A stretch of DNA of 64,000 bases from positions 696,708 to 760,707 of the forward strand of contig NC_052169.1 of NCBI RefSeq assembly GCF_902713615.1, written 5' to 3'. Origin of the DNA: Scyliorhinus canicula. Its lineage: Eukaryota. Each line of letters opens with the position of its first letter. The first letter of the stretch is position 1. Of this stretch, positions 22,845 through 64,000 are shown in pieces. The notes beneath the pieces are model-generated. The model was not told where the DNA came from. It worked only from the letters and a program-made list of their open reading frames with translations, and did no database searches. The position numbers and the translations under genes are program-made.

Positions 22845-23013
22845 AGACCAGGAGGAAGTGGCTGAATCCAAGAATGGCCAAGAGGCCAAGGGAGTGCATA
22901 AGAAAGTCACTTTTGACCTGTCGGATGACAGTGATGGGGATGAATCGGCCGTCAGCACAGGAGCAAAGAAGCCAGACGAGACCAAATCAGCCTTTGAAAA
23001 ACGTCAAGAAAAG
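22845..23013 (+). CDS. MPHOSPH10: MPHOSPH10 coding exon 4
   Basis: ctcag|; HKKVTFDLSDDSD..KSAFEKRQEK; donor AAG|GTGATT; phase consistent with exons 3 and 5. Confidence 0.93.
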
Positions 23014-23782: not shown

Positions 23783-23924
23783 CTAAACGCACAAATCCAG
23801 CAGCTGGAGAAATCCGCCTTGGAGCAGAAGCCTTGGCAGCTCCTGGGAGAGGTCACAGCTCAGAAACGTCCAGAGAATAGCCTGCTGGAGGAGGACCTCC
23901 TGTTTGACCATGCAGTCAGGAAGG
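23783..23924 (+). CDS. MPHOSPH10: MPHOSPH10 coding exon 5
   Basis: cctgtag|; LEQKPWQLLGEVTAQKRPENSLLEEDLLFDHAVR, conserved MPP10 core; donor G|GTAGGT. Confidence 0.96.
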
Positions 23925-24036
23925 GTAGGTCTTCCCTTCGCACACTCCCCTCAATACTGGGGCAGAGGGGTGGGTGGAGAGAGGTCGGCAAAGACCACTT
24001 GTTATGTTTACGGTATGTCAGAATGTATGAGACAGT

Positions 24037-36400: not shown

Positions 36401-39400
36401 GAGCCTGGTCACTGTGAGAGCCTGGTCACTGTGAGAGCCCGGTCACTGTGAGAGCCCGGTCACTCCGAGCGCCTGGTCACTGTGAGAGCCTGGTCACTGT
36501 GAGAGCCTGGTCACTGTGAGAGCCTGGTCGCTGTGAGAGCCTGGTCACTGTGAGAGCCTGGTCACTGTGAGAGCCTGGTCACTGTGAGCTCCTGGTCACT
36601 GTGAGCTCCTGGTCACTGTGAGCTCCTGGTCACTGTGAGCTCCTGGTCACTGTGAGCTCCTGGTCACTGTGAGCTCCTGGTCACTGTGAGAGCCTGGTCA
36701 CTGTGAGAGCCTGGTCACTGTGAGCTCCTGGTCACTGTGAGAGCCTGGTCACTGTGAGAGCCTGGTCACTGTGAGAGCCCGGTCACTGTGAGAGCCCGGT
36801 CACTGTGAGAGCCCGGTCACTGTGAGAGCCTGGTCACTGTGAGAGCCCGGTCACTGTGAGAGCCTGGTCACTGTGAGAGCCTGGTCACTGTGAGAGCCCG
36901 GTCACTGTGAGAGCCTGGTCACTGTGAGAGCCTGGTCACTGTGAGCTCCTGGTCACTGTGAGAGCCTGGTCACTGTGAGCTCCTGGTCACTGTGAGAGCC
37001 TGGTCACTGTGAGAGCCTGGTCACTGTGAGAGCCTGGTCACTGTGAGAGCCCGGTCACTGTGAGAGCCTGGTCACTGTGAGAGCCCGGTCACTGTGAGCT
37101 CCTGGTCACTGTGAGAGCCTGGTCACTGTGAGAGCCTGGTCACTGTGAGAGCCCGGTCACTGTGAGCTCCTGGTCACTGTGAGAGCCTGGTCACTGTGAG
37201 AGCCTGGTCACTGTGAGCCTGGTCACTGTGAGAGCCTGGTCACTGTGAGAGCCTGGTCACTGTGAGAGCCTGGTCACTGTGAGAGCCTGGTCACTGTGAG
37301 CGCCTGGTCACTGTGAGCTCCTGGTCACTGTGAGAGCCTGGTCACTGTGAGAGCCTGGTCACTGTGAGAGCCCGGTCACTGTGAGAGCCTGGTCACTGTG
37401 AGAGCCTGGTCACTGTGAGCGCCTGGTCACTGTGAGAGCCTGGTCACTGTGAGAGCCCGGTCACTGTGAGAGCCCGGTCACTGTGAGAGCCCGGTCACTG
37501 TGAGAGCCTGGTCACTGTGAGAGCCTGGTCACTGTGAGAGCCTAGTCACTGTGAGAGCCTGGTCACTGTGAGAGCCCGGTCACTGTGAGAGCCTGGTCAC
37601 TGTGAGAGCCCGGTCACTGTGAGAGCCTGGTCACTGTGAGCTCCTGGTCACTGTGAGAGCCTGGTCACTGTGAGCTCCTGGTCACTGTGAGAGCCTGGTC
37701 ACTGTGAGAGCCTGGTCACTGTGAGAGCCTGGTCACTGTGAGAGTCTGGTCACTGTGAGAGCCTGGTCGCTCCGAGCGCCTGGTCGCTGTGAGAGCCTGG
37801 TCACTCCGACCGCCTGGTCACTGTGAGAGCCCGGTCACTGTGAGAGCCTGGTCACTGTGAGAGCCCGGTCACTGTGAGAGCCCGGTCACTGTGAGAGCCT
37901 GGTCACTGTGAGAGCCCGGTCACTGTGAGCGCCCGGTCACTGTGAGAGCCCGGTCACTGTGAGAGCCCGGTCACTGTGAGAGCCCGGTCACTGTGAGAGC
38001 CCGGTCACTGTGAGAGCCCGGTCACTGTGAGAGCCTGGTCACTGTGAGAGCCTGGTCACTGTGAGCTCCTGGTCACTGTGAGCTCCTGGTCACTGTGAGA
38101 GCCTGGTCGCTGTGAGAGCCTGGTCGCTGTGAGAGCCCGGTCACTGTGAGAGCCTGGTCACTGTGAGAGCCCGGTCACTGTGAGACCCCGGTCACTGTGA
38201 GAGCCTGGTCACTGTGAGAGCCTGGTCACTGTGAGAGCCTGGTCACTGTGAGAGCCCGGTCACTGTGAGAGCCCGGTCACTGTGAGAGCCTGGTCACTGT
38301 GAGAGCCTGGTCACTGTGAGAGCCTGGTCACTGTGAGAGCCCGGTCACTGTGAGAGCCTGGTCACTGTGAGAGCCTGGTCACTGTGAGAGCCTGGTCACT
38401 GTGAGAGCCTGGTCACTGTGAGAGCCTGGTCACTGTGAGAGCCTGGTCACTGTGAGAGCCCGGTCACTGTGAGAGCCTGGTCGCTGTGAGAGCCTGGTCG
38501 CTGTGAGAGCCTGGTCACTGTGAGAGCCTGGTCACTGTGAGAGCCTGGTCACTGTGAGAGCCTGGTCACTGTGAGCTCCTGGTCACTGTGAGAGCCCGGT
38601 CACTGTGAGCGCCTGGTCACTGTGAGAGCCCGGTCACTGTGAGAGCCTGGTCACTGTGAGAGCCTGGTCACTGTGAGAGCCCGGTCACTGTGAGAGCCTG
38701 GTCACTGTGAGAGCCTGGTCACTGTGAGAGCCTGGTCACTGTGAGAGCCTGGTCACTGTGAGCTCCTGGTCACTGTGAGAGCCTGGTCACTGTGAGAGCC
38801 TGGTCACTCCGACCGCCTGGTCACTGTGAGAGCCTGGTCACTGTGAGCTCCTGGTCACTGTGAGAGCCCGGTCACTGTGAGAGCCCGGTCACTGTGAGAG
38901 CCCGGTCACTGTGAGAGCCCGGTCACTGTGAGAGCCCGGTCACTGTGAGAGCCCGGTCACTGTGAGAGCCCGGTCACTGTGAGAGCCCGGTCACTGTGAG
39001 AGCCTGGTCACTGTGAGAGCCTGGTCACTGTGAGAGCCTGGTCACTGTGAGCGCCCGGTCACTGTGAGAGCCTGGTCGCTGTGAGAGCCTGGTCACTGTG
39101 AGAGCCTGGTCACTGTGAGAGCCTGGTCACTGTGAGAGCCTGGTCACTGTGAGAGCCTGGTCACTGTGAGAGCCTGGTCACTGTGAGAGCCTGGTCACTG
39201 TGAGAGCCTGGTCACTGTGAGCTCCTGGTCACTGTGAGAGCCTGGTCACTGTGAGAGCCCGGTCACTGTGAGAGCCTGGTCACTGTGAGAGCCTGGTCAC
39301 TGTGAGAGCCTGGTCACTGTGAGAGCCCGGTCACTGTGAGAGCCTGGTCACTGTGAGAGCCTGGTCACTGTGAGAGCCTGGTCACTGTGAGAGCCTGGTC

Positions 39401-42400
39401 ACTGTGAGAGCCTGGTTACTGTGAGAGCCTGGTCACTGTGAGAGCCTGGTCACTGTGAGCTCCTGGTCACTGTGAGAGCCTGGTCACTGTGAGAGCCTGG
39501 TCACTGTGAGCTCCTGGTCACTGTGAGAGCCTGGTCACTCCGACCGCCTGGTCACTGTGAGAGCCTGGTCACTGTGAGAGCCTGGTCACTGTGAGCTCCT
39601 GGTCACTGTGAGAGCCTGGTCACTGTGAGAGCCTGGTCACTGTGAGCTCCCGGTCACTGTGAGCGCCTGGTCACTGTGAGCGCCCGGTCACTGTGAGAGC
39701 CCGGTCACTGTGAGAGCCCGGTCACTGTGAGAGCCTGGTCACTGTGAGAGCCTGGTCACTGTGAGAGCCTGGTCACTGTGAGCTCCTGGTCACTGTGAGA
39801 GCCTGGTCACTGTGAGAGCCTGGTCGCTGTGAGAGCCTGGTCACTGTGAGCTCCTGGTCACTGTGAGAGCCTGGTCACTGTGAGAGCCTGGTCACTGTGA
39901 GCTCCTGGTCACTGTGAGAGCCTGGTCACTGTGAGAGCCTGGTCACTGTGAGCTCCCGGTCACTGTGAGCGCCTGGTCACTGTGAGAGCCTGGTCACTGT
40001 GAGAGCCTGGTCACTGTGAGCTCCTGGTCACTGTGAGAGCCTGGTCACTGTGAGAGCCTGGTCACTGTGAGAGCCTGGTCACTGTGAGAGCCTGGTCACT
40101 GTGAGAGCCTGGTCACTGTGAGAGCCTGGTCACTGTGAGCGCCTGGTCACTGTGAGAGCCTGGTCACTGTGAGAGCCTGGTCACTGTGAGAGCCTGGTCA
40201 CTGTGAGCGCCTGGTCACTCCGAGCGCCTGGTCACTGTGAGAGCCTGGTCACTGTGAGAGCCCGGTCACTGTGAGAGCCTGGTCACTGTGAGAGCCTGGT
40301 CGCTGTGAGAGCCCGGTCACTGTGAGAGCCCGGTCACTGTGAGAGCCTGGTCACTGTGAGAGCCTGGTCACTGTGAGAGCCCGGTCACTGTGAGAGCCTG
40401 GTCACTGTGAGAGCCTGGTCACTGTGAGAGCCTGGTCACTGTGAGCTCCTGGTCACTGTGAGCTCCTGGTCACTCCGAGCGCCTGGTCACTGTGAGAGCC
40501 TGGTCACTGTGAGCTCCTGGTCACTGTGAGAGCCCGGTCACTGTGAGCTCCTGGTCACTGTGAGAGCCTGGTCACTGTGAGAGCCTGGTCACTGTGAGAG
40601 CCTGGTCACTGTGAGAGCCCGGTCACTGTGAGAGCCCGGTCACTGTGAGCTCCTGGTCACTGTGAGAGCCTGGTCACTGTGAGAGCCTGGTCACTCCGAG
40701 CGCCTGGTCACTGTGAGAGCCTGGTCACTGTGAGAGCCTGGTCACTGTGAGCGCCTGGTCACTGTGAGAGCCTGGTCACTGTGAGAGCCTGGTCACTCCG
40801 AGCGCCTGGTCACTGTGAGAGCCTGGTCACTGTGAGCTCCTGGTCACTGTGAGAGCCTGGTCACTGTGAGAGCCTGGTCACTGTGAGCGCCTGGTCACTG
40901 TGAGAGCCCGGTCACTGTGAGAGCCTGGTCACTGTGAGAGCCCGGTCACTGTGAGAGCCTGGTCACTGTGGGAGCCTGGTCACTGTGAGAGCCTGGTCAC
41001 TGTGAGAGCCCGGTCACTGTGAGCTCCTGGTCACTCCGAGCGCCTGGTCACTGTGAGAGCCTGGTCACTGTGAGCTCCTGGTCACTGTGAGAGCCCGGTC
41101 ACTGTGAGCTCCTGGTCACTGTGAGAGCCTGGTCACTGTGAGCGCCTGGTCACTGTGAGCGCCTGGTCACTGTGAGAGCCTGGTCACTGTGAGCTCCTGG
41201 TCACTGTGAGAGCCTGGTCACTGTGAGCGCCTGGTCACTGTGAGCGCCTGGTCACTGTGAGAGCCCGGTCACTGTGAGAGCCTGGTCACTGTGAGAGCCT
41301 GGTCACTGTGAGAGCCCGGTCACTGTGAGAGCCTGGTCGCTGTGAGAGCCTGGTCACTGTGAGAGCCTGGTCACTGTGAGAGCCTGGTCACTGTGAGAGC
41401 CCGGTCACTGTGAGAGCCTGGTCACTGTGAGAGCCTGGTCACTGTGAGAGCCTGGTCACTGTGAGAGCCTGGTCACTCCGAGCTCCTGGTCACTGTGAGA
41501 GCCTGGTCACTGTGAGAGCCTGGTCACTGTGAGAGCCCGGTCACTGTGAGAGCCCGGTCACTGTGAGAGCCTGGTCACTGTGAGAGCCTGGTCACTGTGA
41601 GAGCCTGGTCACTGTGAGAGCCTGGTCACTGTGAGAGCCCGGTCACTGTGAGAGCCCGGTCACTGTGAGAGCCTGGTCACTCCGAGCGCCTGGTCACTGT
41701 GAGAGCCTGGTCACTGTGAGCTCCTGGTCACTGTGAGAGCCCGGTCACTGTGAGAGCCTGGTCACTGTGAGAGCCTGGTCACTGTGAGCTCCTGGTCACT
41801 GTGAGAGCCCGGTCACTGTGAGAGCCCGGTCACTGTGAGAGCCCGGTCACTGTGAGAGCCTGGTCACTGTGAGAGCCTGGTCACTGTGAGAGCCTGGTCA
41901 CTGTGAGAGCCTGGTCACTGTGAGAGCCTGGTCACTGTGAGAGCCTGGTCACTGTGAGAGCCTGGTCACTGTGAGCTCCTGGTCACTGTGAGAGCCCGGT
42001 CACTGTGAGAGCCCGGTCACTGTGAGAGCCTGGTCACTGTGAGAGCCTGGTCACTGTGAGCGCCCGGTCACTGAGAGAGCCTGGTCACTGTGAGCTCCTG
42101 GTCACTGTGAGAGCCTGGTCACTGTGAGAGCCCGGTCACTGTGAGCGCCCGGTCACTGTGAGAGCCCGGTCACTGTGAGCTCCTGGTCACTGTGAGAGCC
42201 CGGTCACTGTGAGAGCCTGGTCACTGTGAGCGCCCGGTCACTGTGAGAGCCCGGTCACTGTGAGCTCCTGGTCACTGTGAGAGCCTGGTCACTGTGAGAG
42301 CCTGGTCACTGTGAGAGCCTGGTCACTGTGAGAGCCCGGTCACTGTGAGAGCCTGGTCACTGTGAGCTCCTGGTCACTGTGAGAGCCTGGTCACTGTGAG

Positions 42401-45400
42401 AGCCTGGTCACTGTGAGAGCCTGGTCACTGTGAGAGCCTGGTCACTGTGAGAGCCTGGTCACTGTGAGCGCCCGGTCACTGTGAGAGCCCGGTCGCTGTG
42501 AGAGCCTGGTCACTGTGAGAGCCCGGTCACTGTGAGAGCCCGGTCACTGTGAGAGCCTGGTCACTGTGAGAGCCTGGTCACTGTGAGAGCCTGGTCACTG
42601 TGAGAGCCTGGTCACTGTGAGCGCCCGGTCACTGTGAGAGCCCGGTCGCTGTGAGAGCCTGGTCACTGTGAGAGCCCGGTCACTGTGAGAGCCCGGTCAC
42701 TGTGAGAGCCTGGTCACTGTGAGAGCCTGGTCACTGTGAGAGCCCGGTCACTGTGAGAGCCCGGTCACTGTGAGAGCCCGGTCACTGTGAGAGCCTGGTC
42801 ACTGTGAGAGCCTGGTCACTGTGAGAGCCTGGTCACTGTGAGCTCCTGGTCACTGTGAGAGCCCGGTCACTGTGAGAGCCTGGTCACTGTGAGAGCCTGG
42901 TCACTGTGAGAGCCTGGTCACTGTGAGAGCCTGGTCACTGTGAGAGCCTGGTCACTGTGAGCTCCTGGTCACTGTGAGAGCCTGGTCACTCCGACCGCCT
43001 GGTCACTGTGAGCTCCTGGTCACTGTGAGCTCCTGGTCACTGTGAGAGCCTGGTCACTGTGAGAGCCTGGTCACTGTGAGAGCCTGGTCACTGTGAGAGC
43101 CTGGTCGCTGTGAGAGCCCGGTCACTGTGAGAGCCCGGTCACTGTGAGAGCCCGGTCACTGTGAGCGCCTGGTCACTGTGAGAGCCTGGTCACTGTGAGA
43201 GCCTGGTCACTGTGAGCTCCTGGTCACTGTGAGAGCCTGGTCACTGTGAGAGCCTGGTCGCTGTGAGAGCCCGGTCGCTGTGAGAGCCTGGTCGCTGTGA
43301 GAGCCTGGTCGCTGTGAGAGCCTGGTCGCTGTGAGAGCCTGGTCACTGTGAGAGCCCGGTCGCTGTGAGAGCCTGGTCACTGTGAGAGCCTGGTCACTGT
43401 GAGAGCCTGGTCGCTGTGAGAGCCTGGTCGCTGTGAGAGCCTGGTCGCTGTGAGAGCCTGGTCACTGTGAGAGCCCGGTCGCTGTGAGAGCCTGGTCACT
43501 GTGAGAGCCTGGTCGCTGTGAGAGCCTGGTCGCTGTGAGAGCCTGGTCACTGTGAGAGCCCGGTCGCTGTGAGAGCCTGGTCACTGTGAGAGCCCGGTCG
43601 CTGTGAGAGCCTGGTCGCTGTGAGAGCCTGGTCACTGTGAGAGCCTGGTCACTGTGAGAGCCGGGTCACTGTGAGAGCCTGGTCACTGTGAGAGCCTGGT
43701 CACTGTGAGCGCCCGGTCACTGTGAGAGCCTGGTCACTGTGAGAGCCCGGTCGCTGTGAGCTCCTGGTCACTGTGAGAGCCCGGTCACTGTGAGAGCCCG
43801 GTCACTGTGAGAGCCCGGTCACTGTGAGAGCCCGGTCACTGTGAGAGCCTGGTCACTGTGAGAGCCCGGTCACTGTGAGAGCCTGGTCACTGTGAGAGCC
43901 TGGTCACTGTGAGAGCCCGGTCACTGTGAGAGCCCGGTCACTGTGAGAGCCCGGTCACTGTGAGAGCCTGGTCACTGTGAGAGCCCGGTCACTGTGAGAG
44001 CCTGGTCACTGTGAGCTCCGGTCACTGTGAGAGCCTGGTCGCTGTGAGAGCCTGGTCACTGTGAGCTCCTGGTCACTGTGAGCTCCTGGTCACTGTGAGA
44101 GCCTGGTCACTGTGAGAGCCTGGTCACTGAGAGCCCGGTCACTGTGAGCTCCTGGTCACTGTGAGAGCCTGGTCACTGTGAGAGCCTGGTCACTGTGAGA
44201 GCCTGGTCACTGTGAGAGCCCGGTCACTGTGAGAGCCTGGTCACTGTGAGAGCCTGGTCACTGTGAGAGCCTGGTCACTGTGAGAGCCCGGTCACTGTGA
44301 GAGCCTGGTCACTGTGAGAGCCTGGTCACTCCGACCGCCCGGTCACTGTGAGAGCCTGGTCACTGTGAGAGCCTGGTCACTGTGAGAGCCTGGTCACTGT
44401 GAGAGCCTGGTCGCTGTGAGAGCCTGGTCACTGTGAGAGCCTGGTCACTGTGAGAGCCTGGTCACTGTGAGAGCCCGGTCACTGTGAGAGCCCGGTCACT
44501 GTGAGAGCCTGGTCACTGTGAGAGCCTGGTCGCTGTGAGAGCCTGGTCACTGTGAGAGCCTGGTCACTGTGAGAGCCCGGTCACTGTGAGAGCCTGGTCA
44601 CTGTGAGAGCCCGGTCACTGTGAGAGCCCGGTCACTGTGAGAGCCTGGTCACTGTGAGAGCCCGGTCACTGTGAGAGCCTGGTCACTGTGAGAGCCTGGT
44701 CACTGTGAGAGCCTGGTCACTGTGAGAGCCTGGTCACTGTGAGCTCCTGGTCACTGTGAGCGCCTGGTCACTGTGAGCTCCTGGTCACTGTGAGAGCCTG
44801 GTCACTGTGAGCTCCTGGTCACTGTGAGAGCCTGGTCACTGTGAGAGCCTGGTCACTGTGAGCGCCTGGTCACTGTGAGCCTGGTCACTGTGAGAGCCCG
44901 GTCACTGTGAGAGCCCGGTCACTGTGAGAGCCCGGTCACTGTGAGAGCCCGGTCACTGTGAGAGCCCGGTCACTGTGAGAGCCTGGTCACTGTGAGAGCC
45001 TGGTCACTGTGAGCGCCTGGTCACTGTGAGAGCCTGGTCACTGTGAGAGCCCGGTCACTGTGAGAGCCTGGTCACTGTGAGAGCCTGGTCACTGTGAGAG
45101 CCTGGTCACTGTGAGAGCCTGGTCACTGTGAGAGCCTGGTCACTGTGAGAGCCTGGTCACTGTGAGAGCCTGGTCACTGTGAGAGCCTGGTCACTGTGAG
45201 AGCCTGGTCACTGTGAGAGCCTGGTCACTGTGAGAGCCTGGTCACTGTGAGAGCCTGGTCACTGTGAGAGCCTGGTCACTGTGAGAGCCGGTCACTGTGA
45301 GAGCCTGGTCACTGTGAGAGCCCGGTCACTGTGAGAGCCTGGTCACTGTGAGAGCCCGGTCACTGTGAGCGCCCGGTCACTGTGAGCGCCCGGTCACTGT

Positions 45401-45770
45401 GAGAGCCTGGTCACTGTGAGAGCCTGGTCTCTGTGAGAGCCTGGTCACTGTGAGAGCCTGGTCACTGTGAGAGCCTGGTCACTGTGAGAGCCTGGTCGCT
45501 GTGAGAGCCTGGTCGCTGTGAGAGCCTGGTCACTGTGAGCGCCTGGTCACTCCGACCGCCTGGTCACTGTGAGAGCCTGGTCACTGTGAGCTCCTGGTCA
45601 CTGTGAGCGCCCGGTCACTGTGAGAGCCTGGTCACTGTGAGAGCCTGGTCACTGTGAGAGCCTGGTCACTGTGAGCTCCTGGTCACTGTGAGAGCCTGGT
45701 CACTGTGAGCGCCTGGTCACTGTGAGCGCCCGGTCACTCCGAGCTCCTGTTCGCTCCGAGCGACTGTGAG
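33468..45770. repeat. MPHOSPH10 intron 8 giant minisatellite, 17-bp unit (cctggtcactgtgagag), ~720 copies
   Basis: 12.3 kb of uninterrupted 17-bp periodicity with a few recurring variants (cccgg, gagct, gagcg, gtcgct, ctccga). Confidence 0.98.
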
Positions 45771-45892: not shown

Positions 45893-46000
45893 CCTGTGCC
45901 TGAAGTGAAGGTGGTCTCTAACTTGCCATCCATCAGTATGGAGGAGGTGGCACCAGTGAATATCAGTGATGCCACGTTACTGGCACCAGAAGAAGTCAAG
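45893..46000 (+). CDS. MPHOSPH10: MPHOSPH10 coding exon 9
   Basis: cttgtcag|; [36 protein letters not shown]; donor AAG|GTAAGA. Confidence 0.96.
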
Positions 46001-46257
46001 GTAAGAGACGAAAGAGGAAAATAATGTAAAGGCAAATGGTGCTGAGCCCTTGGCTGGAATGACAGCCCGCAGTGGCCAGTCTTTGTTACCTCACAGCCGC
46101 TGGGAAACAAATGCAACATTAGCCTCTAAACGTTTGGGGTTTTAGGAAAGGAATTTAAGCTTGTACCTCTGCTCCTGATTGTGTTAGTGACTGCAGGAAA
46201 GTGAATATGCTTTTGTTGAGAAAACCCTGCAGGATTGGGCCCAGCTGTGAAACATCT

Positions 46258-46790: not shown

Positions 46791-47008
46791 ATGTTCAACA
46801 CATTTGATTTACTGCATTGCAGCATTTCATTGTCAGTGTGTCTGTCAAGGGGGAGGGTGCCAGAATGGGCACAAAAAGAGACTATTGTTCAATGGATGCT
46901 GGTTTATTATTATTATTAGTGTATTGTTGAGCATTATTATTGGTTTATTATTGTATTGAATGAGATGCGAGTCTGTGGTTGGTGTCTGAGCTGTGCTGAT
47001 AATTACAG

Positions 47009-47239
47009 GAGAAGAGTCGGGCCGGGGACGTCCAGGGAGACTTGGAAAAGACAGAAACCGATAAGAAACGGGAGAGGAGGAGAAAGAAGAAAGTGAAACG
47101 TCTCCGACTGAGAGCAAAAGCGGCGCATCAGAAAGTGTTGGAGAAGCTGAATGTGAAGCTGAGCACTGACCAAGTGAAGGAAAAGAATGCTGAGAAAGTG
47201 AAGCAATTAACCCAGGAAGGGAAGGCGTTGCTGCTGAAG
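47009..47239 (+). CDS. MPHOSPH10: MPHOSPH10 coding exon 10
   Basis: ttacag|; EKSRAGDV..EKTETDKKRERRRKKK..GKALLLK, basic C-terminal region; donor AAG|GTGAGT. Confidence 0.95.
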
Positions 47240-47395
47240 GTGAGTACTGACACACAGTGATTAAACCAGAGCCGGGTTGGCAGTGTAATCAGGCTGTTTA
47301 TCATGTATCTCTCTGACTCAGGGAGAAGGAGAGATTAAATTAGTTTTATAATGTTTTATTTCCTTTGCCAGGTAATCACTATTGTTGCTGTTAGT

Positions 47396-50822: not shown

Positions 50823-51085
50823 TGATGCGTGTAAGTGAATTGGCTGGGAGCCTGATTGATTGGATCATTCAGTTCAAATACAAACGTCCAGCAGTGTGGA
50901 TAAATATCTGGAATTGAGTAAAAGACATAATGTCTCCTTGCCCTGGATATCTTCATATTTATAAATTACTCCCTTGATGAGATCTCTGGGGCCAGCGTTG
51001 TGACGGGCTGTAAATCCCTCACACTGTAGGAGGCCATTCAGCCCCATTGGGTCTGCACGAACCCTCTGAAAACATCAGCCTAGGC

Positions 51086-51890
51086 GCAGGCTGTGATTGG
51101 CGGAGCCGTGTGCGGGCTGTGATTGGTGGGGCTAGGTGTGGGCTGTGATTGGCGGATCCGGGCGCGGGCTGTGATTGGTGGGGCTAGGTGCAGGCTGTGA
51201 TTGGTGGAGCTGTGCGCGGGCTGTGATTGGCGGTGCCGGGCGTGGGCTGTGATTGGTGGTGCCAGGCGCGGGCTGTGATTGGTGGGGCTAGGTGCAGGCT
51301 GTGATTGGTGGAGCCGTGCGCGGGCTGTGATTGGCGGTGCCGGGCGTGGGCTGTGATTGGTGGATCTGGGCGGAGATTGTGATTGGTGGATCCGGGCGTG
51401 GGTTGTGATTGGTGGATCCGGGCGCGGGCTGTGATTGGCGGGTCCGGGCGCGGGTAGTGTTTGGTGGTGCTGGGCGCGGGCTGTGATTGGTGGTGCCGGG
51501 CGTGGGCTGTGATTGGCGGGTCCGGGCGTGGGCTGTGATTGGTGGGTCCGGGCGCGGGTAGTGATTGGTGGTGCCGGGCGTGGGTTGTGATTGGTGGATC
51601 CGGGCGCGGGCTGTGATTGGCGGTGCCGGACGCGGGCTGTGATTGGTGGATCCGGGCGCGGGCTGTGATTGGCGGGTCCGGGCGTGGGCTGTGATTGGTG
51701 GGTCCGGGCGCGGGCTGTGATTGGTGGATCCGGGCGCGGGCTGTGATTGGCGGTGCCGGACGCGGGCTGTGATTGGTGGATCCGGGCGCGGGCTGTGATT
51801 GGCGGTGCCGGGCGCAGGCTGTGATTGGCGGTGCCGGGCGCGGGCTGTGATTGGTGGATCCGGGCGCGGGCTGTGATTGGCGGGTCCGGG
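51086..51890. promoter_or_regulatory. Tandem array of ~30 x 26-bp units carrying inverted CCAAT boxes, abutting the FAN1 ATG
   Basis: Unit gggctgtgATTGGyggrtccgggcgc (CCAATCACAGC on minus, an NF-Y-type context); first ATTGG at 51096, last at 51876; CpG-rich. Confidence 0.8.
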
Positions 51891-52824
51891 ATGTTGGGTG
51901 GGAAGCGGCTCCGTTCCGGCCTCTCGCTCCGGGCCCGGCGGGAAAGCGCTGCAGCCCGGGGCGGGCTCGAGACCCCAGCCCGGGGCGAGGGGGAGGGAGC
52001 GGCAGGGCCCCCCGGAGGACACAGCGGCTTCGGGGCTGAGGGGAAGCCGGAGGGCAGCCGGAGGCGGCGGCTCCAACTCGCAAAGAGACACCGGGGGGAG
52101 GGAGACGTTCCGGGCCGGGGTCAGGGTCCCGGGGGGCTGGGCCGGGGTCAGGGTCCCGGGGGCCGGGGTCAGGGTGAGGGTCCCGGGGGTCCGGGCCGGG
52201 GTGAGGGTCCCGGGGGGCTGGGCCGGGGTGAGGGTCCCGGGGGCCGGGGTCAGGGTCCCGGGGGCCGGGGTCAGGGTCCCGGGGGGCTGAGCCGGGGTGA
52301 GGATCCCGGCCGGCCTGGGGGGCTGAGCCAGATTGAGGGTCCCGGGGGTCCGGGCCGGGGTGAGGGTCCCGGCCGGCCTGGGGGGCTGAGCCAGATTGAG
52401 GGTCCCGGGGGTCCGGGCCGGGGTGAGGGTCCCGGCCAGGGTGAGGGTCCCGGGGGGCTGGGCCGGGGTGAAGGTCCCGGGGGGCTGGGCCGGGGTGAGG
52501 GTCCCGGGGGGCTGAGCCGGGGTGAGGGTCCCGGCCAGACTGAGGGTCCCGGGGGTCCGGGCCGGGGTGAGGGTCCCGGGGGGCTGGGCCGGGGTGAGGG
52601 TCCCGGCCGGGGTGAGGGTCCCGGGGGTCCGGGCCAGGGCGAGGGTCTCTTAGGGCTGGGCCAGGGTGAGGGTCCCTTGGGGCTGGGCCGGACGGACGGT
52701 TTCCCGCTGCCTTATTATCTGAGGAATTTCCTGATTGCGCTGCAGGCGGTTCTCCGGAGTGAAGATAAAGAACTTTTTGATGAAGGAGACGCGCTCTGGT
52801 TGGGAATGTTCCAGAATCTCTCAG
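51891..52824 (+). CDS. FAN1: FAN1 (FANCD2/FANCI-associated nuclease 1) first coding exon, containing an in-frame GRGEGPGGL repeat
   Basis: First ATG after the CCAAT array; MLGGKRLRSGLSL resembles human KKRPRRSLSI; 3' part PYYLRNFLIALQAVLRSEDKELFDE..FQNLS matches FAN1 [26 protein letters not shown]..FYQLS; donor TCAG|GTGAAT (phase 1). 3' part is high confidence, start codon less so. Confidence 0.85.
52108..52690 (+). repeat. Coding minisatellite in FAN1 (27-bp consensus ggccggggtgagggtcccggggggctg, with shorter variants)
   Basis: Translates as GRG(E/Q)GPGG(L/P) repeats with no frameshift or stop up to the conserved PYYL block. Confidence 0.9.
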
Positions 52825-53119
52825 GTGAATGGCCTGAGTGAGTGTCGGGATCTCCTGCTGCACTTGGCCTCAGTGCCACAGGGCAGGAGTCCCCCGACAA
52901 AGGACATTGAGCGAGAACCAGGTCTGTTCCCTCTGGTTGAATGTCCGGCTGGCGCTGCAGGAACTTCCCGTCCTCGCTCAGCCCGAGGTTGCTGCTGTTG
53001 AGTTGGTGAAATAGCTGCAGGATCCACCTGCACCTCCCTCAACACCAGCACCGCCTGAAGGGCAGAAAAACTCCAGTCTGGCAGCGCCTGTGGAGAGCAG
53101 CCATTTAACTCTCAGTCCT

Positions 53120-53304: not shown

Positions 53305-54690
53305 GCTTATCAATACTCTTAAGAGTTCTGCCATTTACTGTAAATTTCCCATCTATATTAGACCTTCCAAAATGCATTACCTAATTTTTCAGGATTAAAC
53401 TCCATCTGCCATCTCTCCGCCCAAATCTCCAACCAATCGATATCGTGCTGTATCCTTTGGACGGTCTTCATCACTATGCGCAATTCCACTAACCTTTGTG
53501 TCATCTGCAAACATACTAATCAGACCAGTTACATTTTCCTCAAAACCATTTCTATATACTACAAACAGCAAAGGCCCCAGCACTGATCCCTGCGGAACAC
53601 CACTAACCACTGCCTTCCATTCAAAAAACACTCTTCCATTGCTACCCTCTCTTATGTGATCGAGCCGGTTCTGTATCCATCTTGCCAGCTCACCTCTGAT
53701 CCTGTATGACTTGACCTCCTGTGCCAGCCTGCCATGAGGGACCTTGTCAAATGCCTTACTGAAATCCATGTGGACAACATCTAATGCCCTACCCTCATCA
53801 ATCATCTTCGTCACTTCCTCGAGTTAGTGAGACATGACATCCCCTTCACAAAACCATGTTATCTCTCGCTACGTCCACTTGTGGGAGTAAATCCTGTTTC
53901 GAAGAATCCTCTCCAATAATTTCCTTAACATTGACGTATGGCTCACTGACCTGTAATTTCCTGGATTATTCTTGCTACCCTTCTTCAACAAAAGAACAAT
54001 ATTAGCTATTCTTGAATCCTTTTAGACCTCCCCGGTAGCCAGTGAGGATACAAAGATATCTCTCAAGGCCCCAGCAATTTTCTCCCTTGCCTCTCTCAGT
54101 TATCTGGGGTATATTAAATCAGACCTTAATGTTTTCCAAGACCTCCAATACCTCCTGCTTTTTGATTTCAACATGACCCAAACTATCTACATACCCTTCC
54201 CCAGACTCGCCATCAACCAAGTCCTCTTTGGTGAATAATAATAATAATAATCAGTCATTGTCACAAGTAGGCTTCAAATGAAGTTACTGTGAAAAGCCCC
54301 TAGTCGCCACATTCCGGCACCTGTTCGGAGAGGCTGGTACGGTAATTGAACCCGCGTTGCTACCATTGTTCTGCATTACAAACCAGCTGTTTAGCCCACT
54401 GTGCTAAACCAGCCCCTGAATATTGATGCAAAGTACTCATTTAATACCTCGCCCATTTTCTCTGGCTCCACTCATAGATTCCTTCCCCTGTCTTTGAGTG
54501 GGCCAACCCTCTCCCTGACTACCCTCGTGCTCTTTATATTCATATAAAAAACCTTGGGATTTTCCTTAATCCTGATGGCCGATTACTTTTTGTTTCCCCT
54601 TTTACCACTTCTGACTCCTTGCTTAAGTTTCTACTTTCCTTGCATTCCACACTTGCTTTGTGAGTTCCCAGCTTCCTAGCCTTGACAAAT
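53305..54690 (-). mobile_element. CR1-clade LINE ORF2 (RT) fragment, degraded, with a SINE insertion
   Basis: DVVHMDFSKAFDKVPHGRL..GVPQGSVLGPLLFVVY..FADDTK. Confidence 0.92.
54234..54416 (-). mobile_element. tRNA-SINE with (tta)n tail (same family as 11160-11338), inside a CR1
   Basis: ggggctggtttagcacagtgggctaaacagctgg..gggttcaatt..gcctacttgtgacaat..(tta)n. Confidence 0.8.
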
Positions 54691-56355: not shown

Positions 56356-56496
56356 CTGCCGGGCAGATGCTCTATGTGCGACTCTTTCAACGGAAGCTGA
56401 AATGGCTAAAAGTGATAAAACTGAGCTATGCAGAGATTGGTGAGGATCTAACCCCCACCATCGAGGAGCTGCGGCTGGCAGGCTTGTTACAGACAG
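56356..56496 (+). CDS. FAN1: FAN1 second coding exon
   Basis: ttcacag|; [47 protein letters not shown] matches FAN1 [31 protein letters not shown]; 141 nt, phase 1 to phase 1. Confidence 0.96.
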
Positions 56497-56887: not shown

Positions 56888-59800
56888 CCAGAGTGCGGCA
56901 GGAAGGGTCAGAGTGCGGCAGGAAGGGTCGGAGTGCGGCAGGAAGGGTCGGAGTGCGGCAGGAAGGGTCGGAGTGCGGCAGGAAGGGTCGGAGTGCGGCA
57001 GGAAGGGTCGGAGTGCGGCAGGAAGGGTCGGAGTGCGGCAGGAAGGGTCGGAGTGCGGCAGGAAGGGTCGGAGTGCGGCAGGAAGGGTCGGAGTGCGGCA
57101 GGAAGGGTCGGAGTGCGGCAGGAAGGGTCGGAGTGCGGCAGGAAGGGTCGGAGTGCGGCAGGAAGGGTCATAGCGCGACAGGAAGGGTCATAGCGCGACA
57201 GGAAGGGTCATAGCGCGACAGGAAGGGTCATAGCGCGACAGGAAGGGTCATAGCGCGACAGGAAGGGTCATAGCGCGACAGGAAGGGTCATAGCGCGACA
57301 GGAAGGGTCAGAGCGCGACAGGAAGGGTCAGAGCGCGACAGGAAGGGTCATAGTGCGACAGGAAGGGTCAGAGCGCGACAGGAAGGGTCAGAGCGCGACA
57401 GGAAGGGTCAGAGCGCGACAGGGCCGCACGGTAGCATGGTGGTTAGCATAAATGCTTCACAGCTCCAGGGCCCCAGGTTCGATTCCCGGCTGGGTCACTG
57501 TCTGTGCGGAGTCTGCACGTCCTCCCCGTGTGTGCGTGGGTTTCCTCCGGGTGCTCCGGTTTCCTCCCACAGTCCAAAGATGTGCGGGTTAAGTGGATTG
57601 GCCATGCTAAATTGCCCGTAGTGTCCTAAAAAGTAAGGTTAAGGGAGGGGGGTGTTGTTGGGTTACGGGTATAGGGTGGATACGTGGGTTTGAGTAGGGT
57701 GATCATGGCTCGGCACAACATCGAGGGCCGAAGGGCCTGTTCTGTGCTGTACTGTTCTATTCTATAAGGAAGGGTCAGAGCGCGGCAGGAAGGGTCAGAG
57801 CGCGGCAGGAAGGGTCAGAGCGCGGCAGGAAGGGTCAGAGAGCGGCAGGAAGGGTCGGAGCGCGGCAGGAAGGGTCAGAGCGCGGCAGGAAGGGTCGGAG
57901 CGCGGCAGGAAGGGTCGGAGCGCGGCAGGAAGGGTCGGAGCGCGGCAGGAAGGGTCAGAGCGCGGCAGGAAGGGTCAGAGAGCGGCAGGAAGGGTCGGAG
58001 CGCGGCAGGAAGGGTCAGAGAGCGGCAGGAAGGGTCGGAGCGCGGCAGGAAGGGTCAGAGCGCGGCAGGAAAGGTCACAGCGCGGCAGGAAGGGTCGGAG
58101 CGCGGCAGGAAGGGTCGGAGCGCGGCAGGAAGGGTCGGAGCGCGGCAGGAAGGGTCGGAGCGCGGCAGGAAGGGTCAGAGCGCGGCAGGAAGGGTCAGAG
58201 CGCGGCAGGAAGGGTCAGAGCGCGGCAGGAAGGGTCGGAGCGCGGCAGGAAGGGTCAGAGCGCGGCAGGAAGGGTCAGAGCGCGGCAGGAAGGGTCAGAG
58301 CGCGGCAGGAAGGGTCAGAGCGCGGCAGGAAAGGTCACAGCGCGGCAGGAAGGGTCAGAGCGCGGCAGGAAAGGTCACAGCGCGGCAGGAAGGGTCGGAG
58401 CGCGGCAGGAAGGGTCGGAGTGCGGCAGGAAGGGTCAGAGTGCGGCAGGAAGGGTCGGAGTGCGGCAGGAAGGGTCGGAGCGCGGCAGGAAGGGTCAGAG
58501 CGCGGCAGGAAGGGTCGGAGTGCGGCAGGAAGGGTCAGAGCGCGGCAGGAAGGGTCGGAGCGCGGCAGGAAGGGTCAGAGCGCGGCAGGAAGGGTCAGAG
58601 CGCGGCAGGAAGGGTCGGAGCGCGGCAGGAAGGGTCGGAGCGCGGCAGGAAGGGTCGGAGCGCGGCAGGAAGGGTCAGAGCGCGGCAGGAAGGGTCGGAG
58701 CGCGGCAGGAAGGGTCGGAGCGCGGCAGGAAGGGTCAGAGCGCGGCAGGAAGGGTCAGAGAGCGGCAGGAAGGGTCGGAGCGCGGCAGGAAGGGTCGGAG
58801 CGCGGCAGGAAGGGTCGGAGCGCGGCAGGAAGGGTCGGAGCGCGGCAGGAAGGGTCGGAGCGCGGCAGGAAGGGTCAGAGCGCGGCAGGAAGGGTCAGAG
58901 CGCGGCAGGAAGGGTCAGAGCGCGGCAGGAAGGGTCGGAGCGCGGCAGGAAGGGTCAGAGCGCGGCAGGAAGGGTCAGAGAGCGGCAGGAAGGGTCAGAG
59001 AGCGGCAGGAAGGGTCAGAGCGCGGCAGGAAGGGTCAGAGCGCGGCAGGAAGGGTCAGAGAGCGGCAGGAAGGGTCGGAGCGCGGCAGGAAGGGTCGGAG
59101 CGCGGCAGGAAGGGTCGGAGCGCGGCAGGAAGGGTCCGAGCGCGGCAGGAAGGGTCAGAGCGCGGCAGGAAGGGTCAGAGCGCGGCAGGAAGGGTCAGAG
59201 AGCGGCAGGAAGGGTCAGAGCGCGGCAGGAAGGGTCAGAGCGCGGCAGGAAGGGTCAGAGCGCGGCAGGAAGGGTCGGAGCGCGGCAGGAAGGGTCGGAG
59301 CGCGGCAGGAAGGGTCGGAGCGCGGCAGGAAGGGTCGGAGCGCGGCAGGAAGGGTCGGAGCGCGGCAGGAAGGGTCAGAGCGCGGCAGGAAGGGTCAGAG
59401 AGCGGCAGGAAGGGTCAGAGAGCGGCAGGAAGGGTCAGAGAGCGGCAGGAAGGGTCGGAGCGCGGCAGGAAGGGTCAGAGCGCGGCAGGAAGGGTCGGAG
59501 CGCGGCAGGAAGGGTCGGAGCGCGGCAGGAAGGGTCGGAGCGCGGCAGGAAGGGTCGGAGCGCGGCAGGAAGGGTCGGAGCGCGGCAGGAAGGGTCGGAG
59601 CGCGGCAGGAAGGGTCGGAGCGCGGCAGGAAGGGTCGGAGCGCGGCAGGAAGGGTCAGAGCGCGGCAGGAAGGGTCAGAGCGCGGCAGGAAGGGTCAGAG
59701 CGCGGCAGGAAGGGTCAGAGCGCGGCAGGAAGGGTCAGAGAGCGGCAGGAAGGGTCAGAGCGCGGCAGGAAGGGTCGGAGCGCGGCAGGAAGGGTCGGAG

Positions 59801-60075
59801 CGCGGCAGGAAGGGTCGGAGCGCGGCAGGAAGGGTCGGAGCGCGGCAGGAAGGGTCGGGTGCGGCAGGAAGGGTCGGAGCGCGGCAGGAAGGGTCGGAGC
59901 GCGGCAGGAAGGGTCGGAGTGCGGCAGGAAGGGTCGGAGCGCGGCAGGAAGGGTCAGAGCGCGGCAGGAAGGGTCGGAGCGCGGCAGGAAGGGTCGGAGC
60001 GCGGCAGGAAGGGTCAGAGCGCGGCAGGAAGGGTCGGAGTGCGGCAGGAAGGGTCGGAGTGCGCAGGAAGGGTCA
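56888..60075. repeat. FAN1 intron minisatellite, 20-bp unit (gagcgcggcaggaagggtcr), interrupted by a SINE
   Basis: Tandem periodicity either side of 57421-57765. Confidence 0.97.
57421..57765 (+). mobile_element. Full-length HE1-type V-SINE inserted in the 20-bp minisatellite
   Basis: gggccgcacggtagcatggtggttagc..ggttcgattccc..gggccgaagggcctgttctgtgctgtactgttctattctat. Confidence 0.92.
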
Positions 60076-60760
60076 GTGTACAAACATTAAAACAGCAGCA
60101 AATAGGGTCAAAAATGGTAACAAGGCAAAATTAATGGTTCTTAAATGCATGTAGTATTCAGCACAAAATTAATGGCACAATTCAAGGTTAATGGGTGATC
60201 TTATAGCTGTTACATAAACATGATTACAGGGAGATCAAAACTGGGAACTAAATATTCAGGGGTTTGTGACTTTTCGTAAAGAAAGGCAAGAAGGAAAGGG
60301 TGGTGGGGTATCTTTGTTAGCACGAGAAGGAATAAGTACAATAGCAAGATATGATCTTGGATCAGAATATGTAGAATTCATATGGGTGTTGGTCAGAATT
60401 AACAAGGGGAAGACGACACCAGTGGGAGTAGTCTATGGCCCTAAACAAGTAGCTGCACTGTAGGATGGAGAATAAATCAGGAGATAGATAATAAAGGCCT
60501 GTAAAACACTTTAATCATGGTTGACTTTAATCTTCATGTAGATTGGGAAAATCAGAAGTAGCGACGAGGAATGTTTCGTAGAGTGTTTTCAGGACAGTTC
60601 CCTGGAACAATATGTTGTGGATCCAACCAGGGATCGGGCTATTTTGGATTTGGTAATATAATAAACAATCTGAGTAAACGTTCCCCGAGGAAACAGTGAC
60701 CATAACATGGTATAATTTAGCATTCAATTTGAGAGTGAGAAACTTGGGTTGGAAACAATT
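60076..60760 (+). mobile_element. CR1-clade LINE ORF2 N-terminal AP-endonuclease fragment
   Basis: Degenerate WELNIQG..FRKERQEGKGGGVSLL..VEFIWV..GVVYGP..DFN..FLEQYVVDPTRDRAILDLV. Confidence 0.85.
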
Positions 60761-61206: not shown

Positions 61207-61405
61207 GGTCGGAGCTCTGCGATGTCTCCGAGGCCCTGGACCTGTTGTCAGCTCCTGAGCTCAAACTATTGGCTAAAAGCTTCCACCTGCGAACCCAGGG
61301 TCAGAGGGCAGAGATTCTGAAGTCCCTGCTACGTTTGGCCAAACAGCAATCGATCTTCAGCAGTAAACAGAAACCGTCCAGTCCCGGCCTCACCATCCTC
61401 AACAG
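61207..61405 (+). CDS. FAN1: FAN1 third coding exon (SAP domain); gene continues beyond the window
   Basis: ctctcag|; SELCDVSEALDLLSAPELKLLAKSFHL..LLRLAKQQSIF..ILNR matches FAN1 SAP region (LELLSAPELKSLAKTFHL); probable donor AG|GTCTTT is weak. Confidence 0.92.
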
Positions 61406-61509: not shown

Positions 61510-64000
61510 GCCCCAGGGAGGGGAGGGGCCGGGGAGGGGCCGGGGCGGCGGGGAGGGGGTCGGGGCAGCGGGGAGGGGGCGGGGCGGCGGGGAGGGGCCG
61601 GGGCGGCGGGGAGGGGGTCGGGGCAGCGGGGAGGGGCCGGGGCGGCGGGGAGGGGCGGGGAGGGGCCGGGTGGCGGGGAGGGGTCGGGGCGGCGGGGAGG
61701 GGCCGGGCGGCGGGGAGAGGGATCCGGGCGGCGGGGAGGGAGCCGGGCGGCGGGGAGGGGGGCCGGGCGGCGGGGAGGGGGCCGGGCGGCGGGGAGGGGT
61801 CAGGGCGGCGGGGAGGGGTCAGGGCGGCGGGGAGGGGGTCCGGGCGGCGGGGAGGGGTCAGGGCGGGGCGGGGAGGGGGGCCGGGCGGCGGGGAGGGGGT
61901 CCGGGCGGCGGGGAGGGTCCGGGCGGCGGGGAGGGGGGCCGGGCGGCAGGGAGGGTCCGGGCGGCGGGGAGGGGCCGGGCGGCGGGGAGGGGGTCCGGGC
62001 GGCGGGGAGGGTCCGGGCGGCGGGGAGGGGGCCGGGGGGGGGGGGCGGGGGAGGGAGGGCTCGGGCCGGGCGGGGAGGGTCAGGTGGGCGNNNNNNNNNN
62101 NNNNNNNNNNNNNNNNNNNNNNNNNNNNNNNNNNNNNNNNNNNNNNNNNNNNNNNNNNNNNNNNNNNNNNNNNNNNNNNNNNNNNNNNNNNNNNNNNNNN
62201 NNNNNNNNNNNNNNNNNNNNNNNNNNNNNNNNNNNNNNNNNNNNNNNNNNNNNNNNNNNNNNNNNNNNNNNNNNNNNNNNNNNNNNNNNNNNNNNNNNNN
62301 NNNNNNNNNNNNNNNNNNNNNNGGAGGGGTCCGGGTGGCGGGGAGGGGTCAGGGCTGCGGGGGGAGTGATTCAGGGCGGCGGGGAGGGGGGCCGGGCGGT
62401 GGGGAGGGGTCAGGGTGGCGGGGGGAGTGATTCAGGGCGGCGGGGAGGGGGTCCGGGTGGCGGGGAGGGGTCAGGGCTGCGGGGGGAGGGGGTCAGGGTG
62501 GCGGGGAGGGGTCAGGGTGGCGGGGAGGGGGGTGGGGTCCGGGTGGTGGGGAGGGGGTCCGGGTGGCGGGGAGGGGGTCAGGGTGGCGGGAGGGGAGTGG
62601 GGTCCCGGGTGGCGGGGATGGGGTCAGGGCCTGCGGGGGGAGGGGGTCAGGGTGGCGGGGAGGGGGGTCGGGGCGGCGGGGAGGGGGTCAGGGTGGCGGG
62701 GAGGGGGTCAGGGCGGCGGGGAGGGGGTCCGGGCGGCGGGGAGGGGGTCAGGGCGGCGGGGAGGGGGTCAGGGCTGCGGGGGGAGGGGGTCAGGGTGGCG
62801 GGGAGGGGGGTCGGGGGCGGGGGGGAGGGGGGTCGGGGCGGCGGGGAGGGGGTCAGGGTGGCGGGTGAGGGGGTCAGGGTGGCGGGGAGGGGGTCCGGGC
62901 GGCGGGGAGGGGGTCAGGGCGGCGGGAGGGGGTCAGGGCGGCGGGGAGGGGTCAGGGCGGCGGGGAGGGGGTCAGGGCGGCGGGGAGGGGGTCAGGGTGG
63001 CGGGGAGGGGAGTGGGGTCCGGGTGGTGGGGAGGGGGTCCGGGTGGCGGGGAGGGGGGCCGGGCGGTGGGGAGGGGAGGGGGGTCAGGGCGGCGGGGAGG
63101 GGTCCGGGCGGCGGGGGAGGGGGGCAGGGTGGCGGGGGGGGGAGTGGGGTCGGGTGGTGGGGGAGGGGGTCCGGGTGGCGGGGAGGGGGCACGGGCCGGG
63201 GGTGGGAGGAGGGAGGGGGTTCAGGGCGGTGGGGAGGGGTTCAGGGGGGCGGGGAGGTGGTAGGGGGGTCCGGTGGGTGGGGAGGGGGTGGGGCGGCGGG
63301 CGAGAGGGGGTCAGGGCGGCGGGAGGGGGTCGGGGCGGCGGGGGGAGGGGGTCGGTGGGCGGCGGGGGAGGGGTCGGGGCGGCGGGTGAGGGGGGGTCGG
63401 GGCGGCGGGGGGGAGGGGGTCGGGGCGCGGCGGGGGGAGGGGGTCGGTGGCTGGGGAGGTTGGTCGGGGGGGGGGGAGGGGGTCGGGGCGGGGGGGAGGG
63501 GGAGTCGGGGCGGCGGGGAGGGGGGGGTCGGGGCGGGCGGGGGGAGGGGTCGGGGCGGCGGGGGATGGGGGCGGGCGGCGGGGGGGGGAGGGGGTCGGGG
63601 CGGCGGGGGGAGGGGGGAGGGGCGGCGGGGGGAGGGGGGAGGGGCGGCGGGGGGAGGGGGGAGGGGCGGCGGGGAGGGGGGTCGGGGCGGCGGGGGGGAG
63701 GGGGTAGGGGCGGCGGGGGAGGGGGTCAGGGCGGCGGGGAGGGGTCAGGGTGGCGGGGGAGGGGGTCAGGGCGGCGGGGAGGGGTCGGGGTGGTGGGGAG
63801 GGGTCGGGCGGCGGGGAGGGGGTCGGGGCGGCGGGGGGAGGGGGTCGGGGCGGCGGGGGAGGGGGTCGGGGCGGCGGGGAGGGGGTCAGGGCGGAGGGGA
63901 GGGGGGTCGGGGCGGCGGGGAGGGGTCAGGGTGGCGGGGAGGGGGTCAGGGCGGCGGGGAGGGGGTCAGGGCGGCGGGGGGAGGGGGTCAGGGCGGCGGG
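61510..64000. repeat. Extremely G-rich ~19-20-bp minisatellite (gggcggcggggaggggtca) in FAN1 intron
   Basis: Degenerate tandem periodicity running to the window end. Confidence 0.93.
62091..62322. other. Assembly gap (232 N)
   Basis: Run of n inside the G-rich array. Confidence 1.

Follow-up and report, generated by a model that had tools for sequence, protein, structure and literature searches.

The window analysed here is a 64,000-nucleotide (64-kb) stretch of the catshark Scyliorhinus canicula (NCBI RefSeq assembly GCF_902713615.1, contig NC_052169.1, positions 696,708 to 760,707, forward strand), and it contains the 5' part of FAN1, a DNA-repair nuclease, with a minisatellite inside the first coding exon. 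Human-type FAN1 carries PIP, UBZ4, MIP (the SPYF box) and MIM motifs ahead of its HTH, SAP, TPR and VRR_NUC domains. An initial annotation of the window reported that the catshark exon holds neither the UBZ4 finger nor SPYF, which raises the question of whether a vertebrate FAN1 has truly lost these recruitment motifs, or whether its short N-terminus is a product of annotation or assembly. The evidence set out below makes it likely that nucleotides 51891-52824 are the true first coding exon of the orthologous catshark FAN1, that the short N-terminus is a clade-wide trait, and that the linker within it is a hot spot of in-frame expansion.

The first coding exon of catshark FAN1

Nucleotides 51891-52824 of the plus strand form one open frame of 311 codons, from ATG 51891 to a phase-1 donor (G/GT at 52824/52825). 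We reproduced the description given in the initial annotation in full: from this ATG the frame runs through about 190 residues of GRG(E/Q)GPGG repeats into PYYLRNF and the donor, and the 311-residue product contains no cysteine and no SPYF. Glycine is its most abundant residue (G115, P35, R34, L30, E28). The exon and its immediate 5' flank divide as follows.

51822-51824, plus strand: in-frame TGA that closes the frame 22 codons 5' of ATG 51891
51891-52111, plus strand: unique N-terminal coding part, aa 1-74 (alignment A1; BLASTP to protein P0200 of Scyliorhinus torazame)
52112-52691, plus strand: coding minisatellite, aa 75-266 (192 aa), GRG(E/Q)GPGG(L/P)-type units (Tandem Repeats Finder, TRF)
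52692-52824, plus strand: conserved 3' end of coding exon 1, TDGFPLPYYLRNF...FQNLS, where the FAN1 HTH domain begins; the phase-1 donor comes next

Between the TGA and ATG 51891 there is no other in-frame ATG. Both flanks of the repeat have counterparts in other FAN1 proteins. Alignment A1 pairs the basic motif KRLRSGLSLRARR (51903-51941) with its homologue KKRPRRSLSLSK in bony-vertebrate FAN1, and the LAKRHR core (52077-52094) with SKLSR(K/R) of the MIM motif. On the other side of the repeat, the conserved first part of the FAN1 HTH domain makes up the final 40 residues (PYYLRNFLIALQAVLRSEDKELFDEGDALWLGMFQNLS), and the PYYL block is matched by tblastn with FAN1 from a lungfish-like species, coelacanth, paddlefish and bichir, at E values from 1.7e-4 (coelacanth) to 2.5e-8. 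A Pfam search with exon 1 returned no match, whether the exon was searched whole, by its tail or by its unique head; in S. torazame, the corresponding residues 143-189 of P0200 (PYYL..VL) match Pfam FAN1_HTH at positions 2-47.

Search for UBZ4, PIP and SPYF in the window

Pfam has no model that detects UBZ even in a FAN1 that bears it, and the finger was sought with a Cys/His pattern and with tblastn. The pattern C-x2-C-x8-14-H-x3-6-C does not occur on the plus strand anywhere in the 64-kb window, and SP[YF]F occurs in none of the six frames of the same stretch. Tblastn with whole N-termini was swamped by low-complexity matches and was repeated with short motif-centred peptides. When PIP-UBZ peptides from 15 UBZ-bearing FAN1 proteins and MIP-MIM peptides from 13 of those were used against the window, only noise was returned (best E 0.07). 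The initial annotation had proposed such a search for UBZ4 and SPYF against the genome; within the window, the outcome agrees with the absence reported there.

FAN1 across cartilaginous fishes

We assembled a chondrichthyan set by phmmer with coding exon 2, by a word search with the Pristis protein and by cluster look-ups. It holds 16 public proteins, from 15 elasmobranch species and the chimaera Callorhinchus milii (P0264, XP_042199072.1, 767 aa), or 17 with the window's own. The elasmobranchs are galeomorph sharks (S. torazame, Mustelus, Carcharodon, Cetorhinus, Stegostoma, Rhincodon, Hemiscyllium and Heterodontus), the squalomorph shark Pristiophorus, and batoids (Pristis, Hypanus, Mobula, Narcine, Amblyraja and Rhinoraja). 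Their FAN1 proteins are 570-928 aa long, compared with about 1000-1085 aa in bony vertebrates, and share a common plan: a start of the form M..P.PKRPR..LSLRARR, 30-60 weakly conserved residues, KLSRR(H/Y)R, a linker rich in G, A, P and E, and PYYL. The KLSRR(H/Y)R motif is kept in 13 of the 16 public proteins, and the linker before PYYL varies between 28 and 223 aa.

A motif scan of the N-termini of the 16 other chondrichthyan proteins found neither a Cys/His finger nor SPYF, and no PIP-like [ST]FF was found before PYYL in any chondrichthyan protein (by scan, and in Callorhinchus P0264 by direct reading). Similarly, a protein search with a UBZ-bearing N-terminal query brought up 64 proteins, and no cartilaginous fish is represented among them. 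Alignment A1 matches the shark start to KKRPRRSLSLSK of bony vertebrates and KLSRRHR to the MIM core, and shows the PIP-UBZ-MIP block as a single gap. Thus, a FAN1 without UBZ4 and SPYF, put forward at first as a possible trait of this lineage, proves to be broader than was guessed, in that it holds for 17 of 17 cartilaginous-fish proteins examined.

These comparisons bear directly on whether the absence is an artefact, with the real FAN1 keeping PIP, UBZ and SPYF by way of a missed upstream exon, a misassembly or a paralogue. The locus does lend itself to such errors, being hard to assemble (47% tandem arrays and an N gap at 62091-62322) and visible to us through 64 kb only. However, two independent Scyliorhinus assemblies both place the Mpp10 gene immediately upstream in the same orientation, an arrangement that limits the space for any upstream FAN1 exon, and the window contains no remnant of UBZ or MIP. 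All 16 chondrichthyan proteins, which apart from the transcript-derived P0088 come from independent assemblies, are devoid of the motifs, and neither of two protein searches turned up a UBZ-bearing chondrichthyan protein. A missed upstream exon is also contradicted by skate mRNA: the Logan contig L002 (2470 nt, intron-less) encodes a complete 705-aa protein, P0209, with an in-frame TAG 5 codons 5' of its ATG, so the UBZ-less open reading frame (ORF) is complete in that skate mRNA. A second skate contig, L001, consists of adapter and 26 nt of 5' untranslated region (UTR) only and is uninformative. We therefore regard an artefact as extremely improbable; the absence of UBZ is neither an artefact nor a local oddity.

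Start codon use and retention of the repeat

Several points weigh against the use of 51891-52824 as a coding exon in its entirety. With a single exception, the proteins compared across species are predicted by computational gene models. P0088, an ORF from a Logan skate transcript, is that exception and was used in the motif scan only; the transcript contigs considered here are from skates only. The RefSeq model of S. torazame (P0097, XP_072348738.1, 606 aa) starts MLYVRLFQ at the exon-2 Met, and an old Callorhinchus model (P0022, XP_007908186.1) joins RRARGE to DRELF, without the repeat and PYYL; annotators have therefore not always accepted exon 1. RNA-labelled sequencing runs hold 25-37% of the sampled words of 51891-52700. 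Typical runs hold a share of about 0.28 of the sampled words, both for 51881-53100 and for 51891-52700, and one run must also hold intron words. Such shares are compatible with the presence of the unique 5' coding part and the exon tail in transcript contigs and say nothing on the array. For the window species, we deduce from the genomic sequence where transcription would start, that ATG 51891 is probably used and that mature mRNA probably keeps the array, whose copy number comes from one assembly.

The two truncated models would fit a main protein that excludes the array and the N-terminal 270 residues, either because translation begins farther 3', at the exon-2 Met for instance (P0097), or because the array is removed as an exitron (P0022 skips both repeat and PYYL, and the array holds 13 GTGAG donor-like sites); the GRG tract would then be 5' UTR or belong to a minor isoform. 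We consider this unlikely. The motifs KRPR..LSLRARR, KLSRRHR and PYYL have stayed conserved in frame across 17 species and over more than 400 million years, which is not expected of a UTR, and PYYL..VL makes up positions 2-47 of Pfam FAN1_HTH. In skates, the homologous start is encoded in mRNA contigs and is closely preceded by an in-frame stop. In addition, length variants of the array are all multiples of 3, and the sole acceptor-like site in the exon, at 52723, would shift the frame when spliced to the phase-1 GTGAG donors, so that a productive array-less isoform is unlikely. We prefer 51891-52824 as a complete coding exon; public models of chondrichthyan FAN1 repeatedly get exon 1 wrong.

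The in-frame minisatellite

The basic unit of the array is 27 bp, or 9 aa (GRGEGPGGL); TRF gives a period of 27, a copy number of 22 and 65% matches. With GGTCCC taken as an anchor, each of the 19 distances from one anchor to the next is a multiple of 3 (27, 21, 63, 36, 18 and 54). Of the other two plus-strand frames through the array, one is interrupted by a stop in almost every unit and the other by five stops in all. The remaining arrays of the window have periods of 17, 19, 20, 22, 26, 28, 30-31, 33 and 35.

The initial annotation had the minisatellite sitting in the place of UBZ4 and SPYF. Alignment A1 contradicts this placement, putting the lost block between LSLRARR and LAKRHR (51942-52076), in unique sequence, whereas the repeat of the window species lies after the LAKRHR motif, in the hypervariable linker. 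The closest comparison is S. torazame P0200 (GCB76148.1), which has the same head (MLGRKRLRSGLSLRVRRESAAARGG...RRRRLQLAKRHRGEG) and the same tail (beginning REDGFPLPYYLRNFL), with about 65 residues between them versus 205 in the window species. Other species have independent in-frame repeats in the same linker: APAQGEGAAPA x17 in Stegostoma, APGEGA x12 in Hemiscyllium, VSPATGEAAASV x8 in Hypanus, and GDTARGDTGPG-type units in Callorhinchus, alongside GRGEGPG x9 in the window species; in-frame repeats are present in Pristis as well. Because the length of the array changes fast while the frame and the flanks are kept, it resembles a coding variable-number tandem repeat (VNTR) under frame constraint. 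Like other coding minisatellites and in-frame VNTRs of disordered linkers, it has units that are multiples of 3, fast copy-number change between sister species and conserved flanks; it differs from them in that its host protein is a nuclease of DNA repair, itself implicated in keeping repeat expansion in check.

As a mechanism, we propose that the linker acts as a hot spot for tandem expansion of the replication-slippage type, which would give rise to different in-frame repeats in each species and would have expanded the 27-bp unit to about 190 residues in the window species, compared with about 65 in S. torazame. Length changes other than multiples of 3 would be eliminated, given that the essential nuclease core follows in the same frame.

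A different role for the array, as a gained module that is PRMT-methylated, condensate-forming or nucleic-acid-binding and replaces the lost recruitment motifs, would suit its very high glycine content, its 14 GRG in 192 aa and its preservation in frame. Against this, the array contains no RGG, and its 16 RG are spaced 6-21 residues apart, as opposed to the 0-4 residues that separate RG repeats in classical RG/RGG motifs; it does not qualify as an RGG/RG-motif domain, which is recognized by clustered RGG/RG, spacing of 0-4 and conservation among orthologues. Arginine and glutamate occur one-to-one (R18 against E18 plus D1), leaving no net positive charge. Nor is the array conserved: the RG-rich domain that the initial annotation had proposed as a feature of the lineage is species-specific, since the 65-aa linker of S. 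torazame has few RG and the A/P/G/E repeats of other species lack Arg. A gained module is thus a very doubtful reading. We instead read the array as a putative tolerated, disordered spacer and not as a new module; in the window species it is presumably translated as a largely neutral, flexible spacer without net charge.

The 27-bp unit of exon 1 shares a GGGTGAGGGTCCC(C)GGG core with a 22/50-bp array that lies 50 kb upstream (2092-3052). Alignment scores between the exon-1 unit and that array are 23-26, against a shuffle maximum of 20, and the arrays at 52112-52691 and 2092-3052 may belong to one G-rich family.

Timing of the loss and rate of evolution

Outgroups of the vertebrates retain the module in whole or in part: amphioxus FAN1 has UBZ, SPYF and a MIM-like motif, FAN1 of the hemichordate Ptychodera has UBZ and SPYF, and UBZ is present in starfish, sea cucumber, jellyfish and spider. 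The sampled bony vertebrates keep PIP, UBZ and SPYF, bar one incomplete model. In the FAN1 tree, Chondrichthyes are monophyletic with support of 100/100, and Callorhinchus is sister to the elasmobranchs. Since outgroups and bony vertebrates keep the module and Chondrichthyes are monophyletic, a single loss on the chondrichthyan stem is most likely; chimaeras and elasmobranchs split more than 400 million years ago. Two Logan transcripts, P0102 and P0116, were considered as chimaera sequences and rejected, as the tree places both with the coelacanth and they are therefore lungfish-like.

Measured from the same node, the FAN1 core has a root-to-tip distance of about 0.5-0.7 substitutions per site in cartilaginous fishes versus about 0.15-0.31 in bony vertebrates. 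This is unexpected, since cartilaginous fishes are generally held to evolve slowly. The faster evolution of their FAN1 core suggests that constraint may have altered on the whole protein.

Downstream exons and gene neighbourhood

The remaining features of the window are the following.

22876-47260, plus strand: Mpp10 (MPHOSPH10-like) gene, last five coding exons (tblastn of P0001)
51083-51880, plus strand: 26-bp minisatellite, about 31 copies, each with ATTGG, the complement of CCAAT (TRF); ends 10 nt 5' of the ATG
56356-56496, plus strand: FAN1 coding exon 2, ...LLQT (FAN1_HTH; phmmer matches to FAN1 proteins)
61207-61405, plus strand: FAN1 coding exon 3, GSELCDVSEALDLLSAPELKLLAKSFH...ILN, SAP subdomain (Pfam Fan1_SAP)
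1186-3052, 13355-14103, 14955-17353, 18261-21820, 29246-31187, 33470-45738, 51083-51880, 52112-52691, 56889-60076 and 61530-64000: tandem arrays of the window

The exon-1 tail PYYLRNF...FQNLS joins exon 2 at a junction that is identical in S. torazame P0200, and over exons 2 and 3 the S. torazame protein P0097 is almost the same. Exon 2 matches positions 41-80 of Pfam FAN1_HTH (PF21315) with E 8.1e-5 and 22.9 bits, which is under the 27-bit cut-off because the domain is split across two exons. Exon 3 matches Fan1_SAP (PF21169) with E 1.8e-16 and 60.4 bits, over the same cut-off. The TPR (PF21170) and VRR_NUC (PF08774) domains, with the nuclease motif PD..(D/E)xK, would lie beyond the 3' end of the window; precomputed matches to both domains are found for every chondrichthyan model, the S. 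torazame orthologue included.

Upstream of FAN1, approximate Mpp10 exon matches lie at 22876-23013, 23822-23926, 32003-32167, 45893-46021 and 46964-47260. The query that detected them, P0001 (g46962.t1), is a chimeric Rhincodon typus model that fuses the Mpp10 C-terminus to FAN1 exon 2, and its residues 1-262 match Pfam Mpp10 with E 7.8e-75. Between the end of Mpp10 (about 47260) and the FAN1 ATG, both on the same strand, are 4.6 kb that hold transposon fragments and the 26-bp array. The latter is presumed to be the promoter/5' UTR region, with the transcription start in or beside the array. In S. torazame the gene order is Mpp10, 2.4 kb, FAN1 and, tail-to-tail on the opposite strand, an MTMR10-like gene with a 3-PAP domain; the window stops short of the corresponding position. 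FAN1 and MTMR10 adjoin each other in human too, and we therefore take the locus to be orthologous.

In total, tandem minisatellite arrays make up 46.6% of the window, and their units, 17 to 35 bp long, are unrelated to one another. Among them is a 17-bp array in an Mpp10 intron that spans 12.3 kb, with 722 copies at 93% identity. A 232-base run of N (62091-62322) interrupts a G-rich 19-20-bp array in FAN1 intron 3, and intron 1 contains a reverse-transcriptase-like ORF on the minus strand (53395-53814) among transposon-like ORFs.

Comparison with other FAN1 proteins

Catshark FAN1 is an orthologue of the human-type protein, sharing its basic motif, PYYL/HTH block and SAP exon; the S. torazame orthologue also shares with it TPR, VRR_NUC and the MTMR10-like neighbour. 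It differs in that about 130 residues with PIP, UBZ4 and MIP are missing, MIM is reduced to an SKLSRR-like core, and a G/A/P/E linker, either short or expanded by repeats, takes the place of the long disordered stretch ahead of PYYL. A nuclease core without the ubiquitin-binding finger is held in common with FAN1 of Schizosaccharomyces pombe and Pseudomonas aeruginosa. The UBZ-less FAN1 of S. pombe and of bacteria is reported to act in cross-link repair or flap cleavage (PMC7990447; PMC4201288). Both are without the Fanconi core pathway, as PMC7990447 states for S. pombe. In contrast to both, the UBZ-less state of chondrichthyans is a secondary loss inside the vertebrates, with vestiges of the animal N-terminus kept.

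According to a 2021 review, PIP and UBZ are well conserved in multicellular eukaryotes (PMC7990447). In our sample, C-x2-C..H..C is also absent N-terminally from FAN1 of the lamprey Lethenteron reissneri (isoform X3, P0055) and of the gastropods Haliotis (P0045) and Batillaria (P0074), each a single gene model or isoform. The lamprey protein keeps a PIP-like motif, SPYF and SKLSR, and that of Batillaria keeps SPYF. Loss of UBZ may be recurrent among animals, or these cases may be an isoform or model effect.

Consequences for recruitment

In human FAN1, MIP comprises residues 124-131 and MIM residues 152-163, with L155 and L159 critical (PMC13473659). The SPYF box of MIP corresponds to residues 126-129, and an extended MIM (145-163) includes I150. 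The equivalent of L159 is invariant in the MIM-like core of alignment A1. At the position of L155, batoids, Heterodontus and orectolobiforms have Leu, and Scyliorhinus, Mustelus and lamniforms have Arg; the preceding strand with the I150 equivalent is absent from the chondrichthyan MIM-like region in the same alignment. The initial annotation had suggested that this FAN1 may be uncoupled from the Fanconi/MutL recruitment route. UBZ, PIP and MIP have gone, but the MIM-like core is kept, so uncoupling from MutL is only partly implied.

From the absence of the motifs in the sequence, we infer that their functions have probably been lost. Without UBZ and PIP, the protein would read neither ubiquitinated FANCD2 nor ubiquitinated PCNA, and should no longer be retained late in foci. 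Foci require UBZ; resistance to mitomycin C does not, being conferred by a SAP-dependent early phase (PMC7990447). Early SAP-dependent recruitment giving cross-link resistance should accordingly remain. Without MIP, which occupies the S2 site of MLH1 in competition with MSH3, FAN1 would not block the coupling of MutSbeta to MutL by S2 competition. Recruitment would then rely on the UBZ-independent SAP/DNA route, possibly together with a weakened MIM-type contact at the S3 site.

One could go further and suppose that cartilaginous fishes have had a FAN1 without ubiquitin-guided recruitment and without MIP since their stem, and that relaxed suppression of repeat expansion contributes to their minisatellite-rich genomes, including the array of the FAN1 exon and the 47% array content of the locus. 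We think this improbable as a whole; the link between the rewiring of FAN1 and minisatellite richness is unsupported speculation, as the initial annotation had itself allowed.

Significance

Our literature search found no paper on FAN1 in sharks or on vertebrate loss of its UBZ, and the protein models on which the comparison draws are public. For annotation, the result carries a warning: the repeat-bearing exon 1 of FAN1 in chondrichthyans is genuine coding sequence, which several pipelines have shortened. For the biology of FAN1, the slowing of CAG expansion by this protein in Huntington's disease is at present explained mechanistically by the contact of MIP/SPYF with MLH1. An entire vertebrate class naturally devoid of PIP, UBZ and MIP, with the nuclease core and a vestige of MIM, amounts to a ready-made separation-of-function allele. 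Chondrichthyan FAN1 thus allows a direct test of which activities of the protein need ubiquitin reading or competition for the S2 site of MLH1.

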